A DNA stretch of 63,886 nt, the filler included, from Octopus bimaculoides (lineage: Eukaryota), in NCBI RefSeq assembly GCF_001194135.2. It is 6 parts of 5 records of this genome, joined end to end, with 100 filler letters (N's around TTAATTAATTAA, not from the genome) between each part and the next. Parts side by side here need not be neighbours in the genome. Positions count along the whole stretch, not along the records: positions 1 to 7,952 come from NC_068981.1; 5 more parts are not named here. One strand, given 5' to 3'. Numbering within the stretch: the stretch's first letter is position 1; every line of letters starts with the position of its first letter. Shown piece by piece: positions 2,924 to 9,961 of this stretch. The notes under the pieces were generated by a model. That model was not told where the DNA came from, made no database searches, and was given only the letters and a program-made list of their open reading frames with translations. The translations under genes were made by a program, and so were the position numbers.

Positions 2924-3731
2924 CCACACATATATAGTATACATACATATACATATGCACATATACTAACATATACATAGATATTGATTCGAATATATTT
3001 ACACCTATAAAAGTTTATATACAATTGCTCACACGGGAAAAAATTTAAAATCAAGCTGTTCGTATTAGATATTAGATATGTATTGCAATGTGTCGTGGAC
3101 TTTTTATATGCCGAAACTTTTCATATTTTCTATGTGGGCATCGAACTAATAATTTCTCAACTTGGTTAATTGTACTAATTTTACAATGTAAGATTTCAAT
3201 TCTTCCTATTAAATATAAACTACACAATTTACTTCCAGATTTATAAAAAGTAGTGTTTCTAAAAATTGGCCAAGATAGTGAATATTTAATATTAATATCT
3301 CTTAATTCTCATATTATGGTAACCAAATAAGCCATATTTAATTTTCCATATTTAAAAGAAGATAAATGGTTATATATATGTAATTAATAGCGACAGAAGC
3401 AGTATATCAAAAGGCAATCTTTATTTATAGGTGTGTTAGAACACAAAATACTGCGTTGCTTATCTTGAGAGAAACTCTCATATAGACACTTGGCGCATAA
3501 ATACACTCGTCGGGTACGTCCGATGGAACTGCCAGATCGCGTGATTTCTCCCTGCTTGGGCTCCTCAGTGGCAGATATCTGGTAGTGACATAACAGCCGA
3601 AACCCCTGATCAATAATATATAGAATTGGAGTGACTTACTCAAGCTTTGATGTCGCAAATAGTCAGTAGGCTTATCTATATATATACATGTAGATGTACA
3701 CCATTTCGATACTGTAATGACAGATACTTTC

Positions 3732-3794
<63 letters not shown>

Positions 3795-4499
3795 TGTATA
3801 TGTATACATATAGATGTATATGTACACGTATATGTATAGATATATATATATATAGATAGATAGATCTATATGCATACATGTATATGTATACATATGTGTA
3901 GATGTATATATATATATAGATGTACATATAATATGTACACATATATACATATATATACATGCATACAGATATCTATACATATATACACCCATCACACACA
4001 CATACACATGCACNNNNNNNNNNNNNNNNNNNNNNNNNNNNNNNNNNNNNNNNNNNNNNNNNNNNNNNNNNNNNNNNNNNNNNNNNNNNNNNNNNNNNNN
4101 NNNNNNNNNNNNNNNNNNNNNNNNNNNNNNNNNNNNNNNNNNNNNNNNNNNNNNNNNNNNNNNNNNNNNNNNNNNNNNNNNNNNNNNNNNNNNNNNNNNN
4201 NNNNNNNNNNNNNNNNNNNNNNNNNNNNNNNNNNNNNNNNNNNNNNNNNNNNNNNNNNNNNNNNNNNNNNNNNNNNNNNNNNNNNNNNNNNNNNNNNNNN
4301 NNNNNNNNNNNNNNNNNNNNNNNNNNNNNNNNNNNNNNNNNNNNNNNNNNNNNNNNNNNNNNNNNNNNNNNNNNNNNNNNNNNNNNNNNNNNNNNNNNNN
4401 NNNNNNNNNNNNNNNNNNNNNNNNNNNNNNNNNNNNNNNNNNNNNNNNNNNNNNNNNNNNNNNNNNNNNNNNNNNNNNNNNNNNNNNNNNNNNNNNNNN

Positions 4500-4870
4500 G
4501 GTCAAACACTGTCTGTAGCTGGTCTTCTCTTGGAAGAGCCCTGCTTCTCACATGGACAACTGTATGTTGGCTGCTCAAGAGTGGGCAGCAAAAAAAAACC
4601 TATTTGTATATGCTCCACAAGGGAAAACAAGGAACATTGTTTACAACGAGGTGTTATAATTACAACAGCAAGAAAGTATGTACATGATCACCTTCTTTTA
4701 CGAAACTTCATTGACTTTCATATATTTATATTGATATACATATATATACGTGTGTGTTGGGTGCGTGTGTGTATATACATCTCTATATATAAAGATGATG
4801 CGTAGTCGAGACGGCGTTTTTAGATTTCATTATTCTTTTTAACCCGGGCAACGCCGGGTATTTCTGCTAG
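4500..4870 (+). mobile_element. Helitron 3' end: RepHel helicase C-terminus plus terminal hairpin and CTAG
   Basis: GQTLSVAGLLLEEPCFSHGQLYVGCSRVGSKK, a frameshift in a poly-A run, then LFVYAPQGKTRNIVYNEVL* (stop 4657-4659). Hairpin ACCCGG-GCAACG-CCGGGT at 4842-4859, CTAG at 4867-4870, followed by T. Confidence 0.92.
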
Positions 4871-5178
4871 TTAGAAATAATTATTAGAGACAGAAGCAGT
4901 ATTAATGCCGAAAGGTAAATAACGCAGTATTTTGTGTTCTAAGACAATGTCTACGTTTAGTTGGATATTTGCTAGGTGCAGATGTGTGGTCTTCAAAGAA
5001 TGTCTGGACGAATATTTATGAGACACAAACTCCGTTCTTCATCAGAAATAATACCGAAAAGAAATCCAATCAACCCAATCACACTGAAAGGCGGTGCCCC
5101 GGTATGACCGCAGCCTCTGAATGAAAGCAGTAAAAGATAAAGGATACACACACTCAACTCTGTCTGTCTGTCTGTCTG

Positions 5179-5263
<85 letters not shown>

Positions 5264-5684
5264 ATGTGTTTGTGTGTCTGTGTTTGTCCCCTCAACATCG
5301 TTTGACAACCGATGCAGGTGTATTTACATCCCCGTAACTTAGCGGTTCGGCAAAAGAGACCGATAAAATAAGTACTAGGCTTCTAAAGAATAAGTCCTGG
5401 GGTCGATTTGCTCGACTAAAGGCGGTGCTCCAGCATGACCACAGTCATACTGAAATGAGTAAAAGAGTAAAGAGTATATGCATACAGGCATATCAAATAC
5501 CACAAGGAATTCTTGATTTATCAAAATTATCACCGTCTCTAGAATATGTCTTAATTACCGAATGCCATTCACTGGAGAAGAGAAGAAAATCTCAAGAATG
5601 GAAAATACTCCAAAGTTGACAAGCTTATTGTCTGGCTATAAGAGAACAGCGGTGGCCACGTGTTTCTGGTTCAATAGCCGTTAC

Positions 5685-5756: not shown

Positions 5757-6086
5757 CTAAACAAAAACAAGCTAAAGAAATAACTCAGAGCATCCAGTGG
5801 CAATGTATTTGAATGACATACACATATACAGGTATATCAAATACTCATATTTGCTGATGTAAGCTTGACAACTCCTTTAGACACCGAACACATTAGAAAA
5901 TCATGCCAATTATTTAACTTTTTTATGATTAGTAGTTCTCAGTGGGCCTTCACACACATTCACCAAAAAGCTAAATTTCCTTTCTGCTATTTATCATATA
6001 AAGACAAAGTCTTATGTACATTTTGCTTACATGCCAGAGGTAGATGGGAACATGTAAATCTCATTAATAATGAACATATATATTAC

Positions 6087-6242
6087 CGTACAACGTTTGT
6101 ATAGCTAATATATCGTCGATGGAGAGTTTCCCGCCATCACACTTTTTATCAAATGGCCACATAATAGCCTGATACTGCGTGGAATGTCCGAGTCCGAAGC
6201 TATGTCCAAGTTCATGTAGAGCAGTACAAAGTAGGCTAGTTC
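6087..6242 (-). CDS. Matrix metalloproteinase (M10A/matrixin) catalytic zinc-binding exon
   Basis: Reverse strand reads ttttacAG|GA ACT AGC...TTG TAC G|GTaata. This is a 156-nt phase 1-1 exon with an open frame: (G)TSLLCTALHELGHSFGLGHSTQYQAIMWPFDKKCDGGKLSIDDILAIQTLY(G). It has HExGHxxGxxH, the Met-turn AIMWP and LxxDDIxAIQxLYG, and matches the usual MMP exon boundaries. Confidence 0.93.
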
Positions 6243-6499
6243 CTGTAAAACAATTTCCAGAGAAATATTAAATTTTTTTTAAATAATGTTACACAGAAAA
6301 TATAATAGAAATTATAATAAACAAAATAATAAATGCACTAATTTTTTTCTCCTAAAACACATGCCTTTCTTCTGAAAACAAAGTATAGTCTTGTAATTTG
6401 CAAAATAGAATATACTTTCCTTTCTGTGCAGCAGCCAATAAAAGACACAGGATAGGGATTTATTACGCGCTTGCGGATGTATGTACATGCATACACACA

Positions 6500-6517
6500 T
6501 GCATATCTATCTATCTG

Positions 6518-6579
<62 letters not shown>

Positions 6580-6672
6580 ATATATGTATGTGTGTGTGTA
6601 TGCATGTGTATATATATACACGTATACACACCCACATTTATATATACATATACATGTATACATACATACACA

Positions 6673-6762
<90 letters not shown>
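6500..6762. repeat. Compound microsatellite (TATC)n-(CA)n-(TA)n
   Basis: Seen directly. Similar tracts occur throughout, for example 2465-2600, 20500-20805, 21244-21395, 27957-28090, 41288-41380, 45355-45660 and 52700-52745. Confidence 0.95.
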
Positions 6763-7079
6763 NNNNNNNNNNNNNNNNNNNNNNNNNNNNNNNNNNNNNN
6801 NNNNNNNNNNNNNNNNNNNNNNNNNNNNNNNNNNNNNNNNNNNNNNNNNNNNNNNNNNNNNNNNNNNNNNNNNNNNNNNNNNNNNNNNNNNNNNNNNNNN
6901 NNNNNNNNNNNNNNNNNNNNNNNNNNNNNNNNNNNNNNNNNNNNNNNNNNNNNNNNNNNNNNNNNNNNNNNNNNNNNNNNNNNNNNNNNNNNNNNNNNNN
7001 NNNNNNNNNNNNNNNNNNNNNNNNNNNNNNNNNNNNNNNNNNNNNNNNNNNNNNNNNNNNNNNATATATATATATACAT

Positions 7080-8798: not shown

Positions 8799-9961
8799 AT
8801 GACTGTGTGCCTAATTTCACTTAGGATCAGCTCTGCACAAGTGTCTCCGTTCAGATATAAATATACAAATTTCTTTAACATAAGCAGAGACAATCTGACA
8901 GTGAAGCCATATGCAAACAGGCACAAATTCACAGCGAAACGAAAATCATCGATATACCAACAAAAAGACAATCACACAATGCCTTGCCCTGCATTCCTTT
9001 CAAAAACATTGATACCATTCAGCATTTGTAAATTCATTTCACTATTACTTTCTGATATTCACACATCATTTGTACTTTCATTTCACTACAACTTACTGAT
9101 ATTCCTTATCAAAAACATTTCTTGTTCCTTTAAGCTATTCTTCTGTATGATATATTTATTTTCCTTGCATTACTGTAATATTGCGTCCGAATTTCATTTC
9201 ACTATTTTTTAATGATATTTATTATCAAAAAAATGTTTCATAAAAAAAGACTGTCACAAAACGAACACCAAACAAATGCACAATGTGCATCAGAAAACGA
9301 TGATGAGATACTCGCACAGCTTGCAGATCAGTGACAGAGAAAGAAAGCTCGACATGCATCTGAAACCGAACATCAACGAAATGCTAGATAAATAAAATAA
9401 CATATGCAACTCACTTATTATTGTCATATCATAAACAAACACAAGTTCATGTATGATATTGATCTTTCTTATACTTCAATTATTACATAGTTTTCTCTTC
9501 TAAAAATACACACATACAGGTTCAGTGTGGTTCTCGATAAACTGTAAAAGTAATTACCTAATCAATGACGGGTTTTACTGCTAGTTTTATATATATATCA
9601 TCATCATCATCATCATCATCATCGTTTAACGTCTGCTTTCCATGCTAGCATGGGTTGGACGATTTGACTGAGGACTAGCGAACCAGATGGCTATGCCAGG
9701 CTCCAATCTGATTTGGCAGAGTTTCTACAGCTGGATGCCCTTCCTAATGCCAACCACTCTGAGAGTGTATTGAGTGCTTTTATGTGTCACCGGGTCGAAG
9801 GCCAGTCAGGCGGTACTGGCAATGGCCACGCTCAAAATGGTGTATTTTATGTGCCATGCCACCTGCACAGGAGCCAGTCTGGTGGCACTGGCAACGACCT
9901 GGCTCTAATGTCTTTTCACATGCCACCAGCACAAGTGTCAGTAAGGCGATGNNNNNNNNNN

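Follow-up and report, generated by a model that had tools for sequence, protein, structure and literature searches.

An exon that reads as part of a metalloproteinase catalytic domain, with a pair of cysteines at its S1' pocket, raises two questions: whether it belongs to a working gene, and what the two cysteines do there. It lies in the first piece, 7.95 kb of record NC_068981.1 of Octopus bimaculoides, of the window, by which we mean the whole stretch of 63,886 nt that was analysed. The reading we favour, with a probability of roughly 60%, is that this is a true internal coding exon, on the minus strand, of a matrix metalloproteinase (MMP; matrixin, M10A) gene with several exons, and that the gene belongs to a little-studied mollusc-type subfamily whose cysteine pair most likely forms a disulfide. 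The exon is a new, unannotated matrixin member of an apparently undescribed structural variant, in which a cysteine pair spans S1' and Tyr240 is lost. It is not a new kind of enzyme, the MMP family itself being well known.

A matrixin exon on the minus strand

Reading and translating the sequence gives a coding exon of 156 nt, 6242..6087 on the minus strand, whose frame is open over all 52 codons; these limits agree exactly with the 6087-6242 of the preliminary description. The exon enters and leaves in phase 1, a codon being divided 1+2 at either end. Read along the minus strand, with a slash at each boundary, it runs ...ttgttttacAG/GA ACT AGC CTA CTT TGT ... TTG TAC G/GTaatata. The peptide therefore opens with a residue that is probably Gly (codon xGA), continues as TSLLCTALHELGHSFGLGHSTQYQAIMWPFDKKCDGGKLSIDDILAIQTLY, and closes with Gly. 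After the open frame, the minus strand (read from 6300 to 6040) gives G/GTAATATAT. The features of the exon, in the order in which the gene would be read, are as follows.

6243..6275, minus strand: 3' splice site, with the T/A-rich tract tttaatatttctctggaaattgttttacag before the acceptor AG (6244-6243); from the sequence and the acceptor phase of relatives
6087..6242, minus strand: coding exon, from translation, Pfam PF00413, PDB MMP matches and the matrixin HMM; it holds the C-terminal third of the matrixin catalytic domain, namely the start of helix B, the zinc motif, the Met-turn, the S1' loop, and helix C to LYG
6226..6228, minus strand: Cys codon TGT, four residues before zinc His 1, position 214 of MMP-1 and Leu193 of MMP-8; from translation and alignment
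6184..6216, minus strand: HELGHSFGLGH zinc-binding consensus with the catalytic Glu, followed by Ser (matrixin signature); from translation and Pfam
6148..6162, minus strand: Met-turn and S1' wall M-W-P-F-D (Met ATG 6162-6160; Asp GAT 6150-6148)
6139..6141, minus strand: Cys codon TGT at Met+7 in the S1' specificity loop, position 243 of MMP-1 and Arg222 of MMP-8; from translation and alignment
6081..6086, minus strand: 5' splice site GTAATA, with GT at 6086-6085, directly after base 1 of the last Gly codon; from the sequence

The assignment to the matrixins rests on profiles and structures. Pfam Peptidase_M10 (PF00413) scores 50.6 bits against a cut-off of 24 (E=2.6e-13) over profile positions 106-159 of 159, and PDB chains of MMP-12, -7, -10, -3, -9, -16, -20 and -1 match the exon peptide with E values from 1e-11 to 6e-7. 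When a matrixin HMM of our own, built from 111 fetched proteins, was scored against 328 six-frame pieces of the 7.95-kb piece, the exon frame came out at E=3.5e-18 and the next best piece at E=1.9. Together with the splice sites, these results bear out the earlier claim of an intact MMP catalytic exon that is absent from the ORF track. Its absence from the ORF list is explained by the lack of any in-frame ATG, GTG or TTG upstream of the Met-turn ATG; the longest ORF inside the exon is 32 aa. A bacterial or viral matrixin is ruled out by this same want of a start codon and by a frame bounded by splice sites that are conserved with intron-containing relatives. The GC content of the exon is 43.6%, against 28% and 32% in its 300-nt flanks.

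Residue numbers can be transferred directly, as the exon peptide aligns without gaps both to MMP-1 (query 7-53 against 47 residues of 966c/1cge) and to human MMP-8. With His10 as His218 of MMP-1, Cys6 falls at 214, Asp32 (Met+4) at 240 and Cys35 (Met+7) at 243. The MMP-8 equivalents are Leu193 for index 6, His197 for 10, Met215 for 28 and Arg222 for 35; they were counted from Phe79 in chain 1jan, on an MMP-8 segment that matches PDB chains at 100%. The alignment to 966c/1cge thus upholds the earlier placement of the two cysteines at 214 and 243 and of Asp for Tyr240, and the translation upholds the earlier statement that the catalytic Glu and all three His are intact.

The signature features of a matrixin are present with one exception. 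HExxHxxGxxH with the catalytic Glu and the following Ser reads HELGHSFGLGHS at 6216-6181. The Met-turn HSTQYQAIMWP places Met eight residues after the third His, at the same index as Met215 of MMP-8, and x-P follows. Helix C keeps its motif DDxxxIQxLYG. The exception is the Tyr at Met+4 (MxPxY), a highly conserved but not strictly defining residue found in 274 of 356 matrixin motifs, which is replaced here by Asp. Given the intact Glu, three His, Met-turn and helix C, we predict that the enzyme should be catalytically competent.

The gene structure of the relatives agrees well with that of the octopus exon. Four loci, L001-L004, found around P0007, P0010 and P0014 (sequences introduced below), are complete multi-exon MMP genes with exons for a PRCG(V/L)P(D/E) prodomain, the catalytic domain and hemopexin. 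A cysteine-switch prodomain is present in loci L001-L003 and in the relatives P0031, P0032 and P0065. In all four loci the homologous exon ends TAY G/GT, with donor position and phase as in the present exon, where TAC G/GTAATA ends the exon after base 1 of the LYG Gly codon, in keeping with eukaryotic MMP exon structure. The acceptor of the homologous exon is likewise in phase 1, at the position of the present exon in L002 and L003 and one codon earlier in L001 and L004. This conservation of splice structure in the loci of relatives is good support for a true exon.

Two of these loci, L002 and L003 (ENA assembly ERZ25071447, contigs ctg86083 and ctg86258), carry one MMP gene with an identical zinc-motif exon. 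Their intron lengths differ, with 0.85 kb up to the preceding exon at one locus and 2.3 kb at the other, and an rve-integrase fragment lies downstream in both. They are either haplotypes or the products of a very recent duplication.

A cysteine pair shared with other molluscan MMPs

A HMMER scan of 1.84 billion cluster representatives recovered 869 matrixins at E<=1e-3. None of these exceeds ~61% identity over the exon, so that no close orthologue is found among them, and a metagenome scan gave only distant matrixins, none above 46% identity across the whole exon. In the word-indexed protein search, which is lossy, a profile of the exon region drew exon-sized ORFs only, and one built on four catalytic domains drew generic vertebrate and bacterial matrixins but not the query proteins themselves. 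Both cysteines, at identical spacing, recur in a group of the matrixins from the HMMER scan. P0007, P0010, P0013 and P0014 are exon-sized ORFs on long ENA contigs of marine origin, and P0022 and P0081 come from Logan assemblies. P0031, P0032 and P0065 are full-length proteins: P0031 is Haliotis asinina XP_067667989, with orthologues in H. rufescens (XP_048257006) and H. cracherodii (XP_071092909); P0032 is Haliotis rubra XP_046568580; and P0065 is Lottia gigantea XP_009053959 (LOTGIDRAFT_160600).

For present purposes we define an informal two-cysteine subgroup by the pattern C-x3-HExxHxxGxxH-x7-M-W-P-[WF]-x3-C. In the octopus exon one cysteine stands four residues before the first His and the other at Met+7, and the stretch that separates them is free of indels. 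Alignment A1, of nine members, is invariant at both Cys, all three His, two of the Gly, the Met, the Pro and YG. Members read MWP (MYP in one) and then Trp or Phe, the Phe of the exon at Met+3 being common to P0081. At Met+4 they never carry Tyr; Ala, Val, Arg or Leu is found in the members and Asp in the exon. The S1' loop is short, which for the subgroup we take as 15-16 residues from Met to DD; the exon has the MMP-1 spacing. Judged by these shared residues, the gene of the exon is a member of a lophotrochozoan, mainly molluscan, MMP subfamily with a cysteine pair, a short S1' loop and no Tyr240. The preliminary description had suggested a possible lineage-specific MMP expansion. This part of it did not hold: the features are peculiar neither to this gene nor to a recent expansion. 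They recur in MMPs of Haliotis and Lottia, and by sequence comparison an older subfamily, with these gastropods among its members, is marked by the cysteine pair, MWP[W/F] and the loss of Tyr240.

The two cysteines tend strongly to occur together. Among 356 H[EQ]xxHxx[GA]xxH-x7-M motifs parsed from 363 fetched proteins, a biased and partly redundant sample of the best matches to a two-cysteine query plus generic MMPs, 13 have both cysteines and 339 neither, with 2 having the first only and 2 the second only (Fisher p ~6e-20). Several of the 13 are orthologues, which leaves ~8 independent sequences, the exon of the present stretch included. One of the cases with the first cysteine only, P0070, may be intron read-through before a differently placed exon boundary. 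Relatives with MWPW that are without the first cysteine are also without the second: P0012 (Tyr/Tyr), P0016, P0034, P0086 and P0121, the last being the bryozoan Watersipora subatra. These counts support the earlier proposal that the two cysteines are partners, and they lend the idea of a disulfide real comparative backing.

Two further observations concern the role of the pair. In three secreted proteins, P0032, P0065 and the product of the L004 gene, the catalytic domain has no cysteines other than these two. P0007 (locus L001, 10001-10249) and P0081 read HQxGH, with the catalytic Glu changed to Gln, and are probably inactive pseudo-proteases by this substitution. That both cysteines are kept in these two members speaks for a structural role.

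In the P0031/L002 clade the catalytic domain contains further cysteines, in or near the neighbouring beta-strands I and III. P0031 of Haliotis has two (..LTYCV.. and ..PHCNVDIV..), and L002, around 8900-9150, has one at the second of these sites (..KKCPADIV..). The extra cysteines of P0031 may pair as a second disulfide, and other pairings are possible in this clade.

Co-conservation, a shared pocket and a secreted domain together make a disulfide the most likely state of the pair. Alternatively, the exon may be functional and its cysteines free or reversibly oxidised thiols in S1', acting as a redox switch, binding a metal or taking up a covalent ligand. The redox-sensitive specificity raised in the preliminary description is speculative. 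The evidence presented here fits a permanent and a reversible bond alike, and the two side chains would lie in a pocket that is open to solvent and next to the catalytic zinc (PMC7290392, PMC5085792). As secreted enzymes, however, MMPs enter oxidising surroundings, and a structural bond agrees better with the finding that the two cysteines strictly co-occur and persist in the dead HQxGH members. We therefore regard free or reversible thiols as distinctly unlikely, and a structural disulfide that closes the S1' pocket as probably the best reading.

An isolated exon among repeats

If the exon belongs to a complete gene, the remaining exons have to be accounted for. A tblastn search of the 7.95-kb piece with 59 full-length MMPs reached no lower E value than 0.04 away from the exon, and profile HMMs of the pro- and catalytic domains and of the hinge and hemopexin gave at best E=1.9 and E=0.5, respectively, beyond it. 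No other MMP exon is found in the 6 kb downstream or the 1.7 kb upstream, PRCGxPD prodomain exons and S-loop exons with zinc and calcium ligands included. Scans of the same piece for tRNAs and Rfam families gave no match, and exact look-ups of nine of its ORFs and of the 32-aa ORF within the exon found no entry in the protein collection. The surroundings contain the following.

4014-4499: assembly gap of 486 N, downstream of the exon
6763-7063: assembly gap of 301 N with (TA)n on both sides, 520 nt upstream of the exon in gene orientation
4500-4871, plus strand: Helitron remnant, with a Helraiser match and a 3' terminus
2581-2743 and 5253-5420: direct repeat pair (80%), each copy after a (TA)n(TG)n microsatellite, SINE-like
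1-179 and 938-1143: inverted repeat pair (79%)
3432-3466 and 4912-4946: inverted repeat pair (89%)

Microsatellites with units of two and four nucleotides, among them (TA)n and (TG)n, (GA)n, (CATA)n and (CTAT)n, are very dense throughout, for example at 2467-2600, 2850-2935, 3715-3960, 5164-5290 and 6500-6762. They yield most of the long 'ORFs' of the mechanical list, and the overall GC content is 35%.

This setting gives some weight to the possibility that the exon is a relic, orphaned or part of a pseudogene, of an MMP paralogue that has decayed, still looking intact but included in no functional mRNA. It is the sole MMP-like segment of the 7.95-kb piece, whereas the neighbouring exons of relatives are only 0.4-2.3 kb away. 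Microsatellites, interspersed repeats and a Helitron remnant surround it. Moreover, no annotated protein containing it was retrieved, in protein look-ups that were incomplete (the word-indexed search is lossy and missed P0142, which shares eight 5-residue words). Against decay, the frame is open over its whole length between canonical splice sites in the conserved phase, every expected catalytic and structural residue is present, both subfamily cysteines included, and GC rises within the exon. The 301-N gap lies close enough that it could hide the preceding catalytic exon, and long, repeat-filled introns would account for the spacing. We consider a relic unlikely on balance, and the best explanation places the other exons of a genuine gene beyond the 7.95-kb piece or within its N gaps.

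Helitrons capture host gene fragments, and the nearby element raises the question of whether the exon arrived in this way. Directly after the 486-N gap, at 4500-4586 on the plus strand, the frame reads GQTLSVAGLLLEEPCFSHGQLYVGCSRV, a C-terminal fragment of Rep/Hel that matches residues 1431-1459 of the 1496 of the Helraiser transposase (PDB 7lcc; E=1.3e-3); the remainder of the Helitron ORF would lie in the gap. The element has a canonical 3' end at 4843-4871, formed by the hairpin ACCCGG-GCAACG-CCGGGT (4843-4860), a 6-nt spacer, CTAG (4867-4870) and T, and the hairpin starts ~260 nt past the Rep/Hel fragment. This textbook terminus stops 1.2 kb short of the exon, and the exon has conserved splice sites in the phase of bona fide genes. 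With the 3' end of the element at ~4870, we reject capture by this Helitron as highly improbable. Relative to the MMP gene the element is in antisense orientation, within the presumed intron that follows the exon.

The S1' pocket compared with known metalloproteinases

Where the two cysteines would sit can be gauged from human MMPs of known structure. Bode et al. 1994 are said to have described Arg222 of MMP-8 as flanked by Leu193, the counterpart of the first cysteine of the exon. Residue 214 sets the depth of S1', being Arg in MMP-1, Tyr in MMP-7 and Leu in most other MMPs (PMC7290392). Arg222 of MMP-8 fills or hinders the S1' site and takes part in the rearrangement of the S1' loop (PMC5085792, PMC7344628). 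In MMP-1 the residue at 214 is large and that at 243 small, and in MMP-8 it is the other way round; by analogy, this exchange of size suggests that the two side chains share one space. At residue 240 it is the backbone NH, and not the side chain, that binds substrate (PMC10659029), so that a change from Tyr to Asp need not abolish activity.

From these positions, the two cysteines would most likely form an intradomain disulfide that joins the first turn of helix B to the specificity loop. Both side chains are expected to point into the bottom of the S1' pocket, so that a bridge between them would close and stiffen it. The effect may be likened to that of Arg214 in MMP-1, Tyr214 in MMP-7 and Arg222 in MMP-8, and the expected outcome would be an S1' site that is shallow and rigid and prefers P1' residues of small or medium size. 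An AlphaFold model of the catalytic domain of a Haliotis relative, computed from a 4-sequence alignment, places the first cysteine in a helix (117-130) and the second in coil; its pLDDT of 53.9 is too low for it to serve as evidence.

A broader proposal follows the same lines. It holds that a conserved disulfide at the S1' bottom (214 to 243), together with the loss of Tyr240, defines an undescribed, ancient lophotrochozoan MMP clade of which the exon is an unannotated member. The S1' site of such enzymes would be covalently locked and shallow, and their specificity, their susceptibility to inhibitors and TIMPs, and possibly their redox sensitivity would be unlike those of all characterised MMPs. 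To this proposal as a whole we give even odds. Searches of the literature for the motif and for disulfides in MMPs of molluscs turned up no account of such a variant, nor any biochemical characterisation of the Haliotis and Lottia subgroup proteins.

If the proposal is true, it would be of moderate interest to protease specialists and would describe a clade-specific innovation in molluscs, opening no long-standing question. The selectivity of MMPs for substrates and inhibitors is set largely by residue 214 and the flexible S1' loop, and a natural subfamily that ties the one to the other would be a ready-made experiment on S1' loop mobility, specificity and inhibitor binding. Canonical TIMPs are reported to have been lost or nearly lost in molluscs, with none in gastropods and one or none in cephalopods (PMC10755359). 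TIMPs inhibit by reaching into the S1' pocket. For annotation, the lesson is that a catalytically complete MMP exon may be missed when it stands alone in repeat-rich DNA without an in-frame start.

To our knowledge, the catalytic domains of classical MMPs are described as lacking such disulfides and are the textbook disulfide-free metzincin domains. In the metzincin catalytic domains of adamalysin/ADAM and astacin, conserved disulfides stabilise the lower, C-terminal sub-domain near the Met-turn and S1'. Their cysteines are at other positions, and they belong to a different family from that of the exon.

Among human MMPs with a shallow S1', MMP-1 (Arg214) and MMP-7 (Tyr214) resemble the exon in having a residue other than Leu at 214 that limits the pocket (PMC7290392), and in MMP-1 the S1' loop from Met to DD equals that of the exon in length. 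Unlike these two, in which a bulky side chain does the work, the exon would have its pocket limited by a covalent bridge, and it has lost Tyr240. Human MMP-8 has Leu193 at the position of the first cysteine and Arg222, with its side chain in S1', at that of the second (PMC5085792, PMC7344628). Its Leu-Arg packing is non-covalent, however, and its loop is mobile enough to open an S1'* sub-site, a movement that a disulfide should block.

The closest known parallels are the Haliotis and Lottia proteins annotated as 'MMP-14-like', 'MMP-16-like' and 'MMP-9-like'. They carry C-x3-HExxH...M[WY]PW-x3-C with spacing identical to that of the exon and are 43-49% identical to it. They also share with it a residue other than Tyr at 240, a short S1' loop and the DD..IQ.LYG helix C. 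At Met+3 the exon has Phe where they have Trp, and at Met+4 it has Asp where they have Ala, Val, Arg or Leu. They are full-length models, with a signal peptide, PRCGVPD switch, furin site and hinge and with or without hemopexin, whereas in the octopus one exon is visible.
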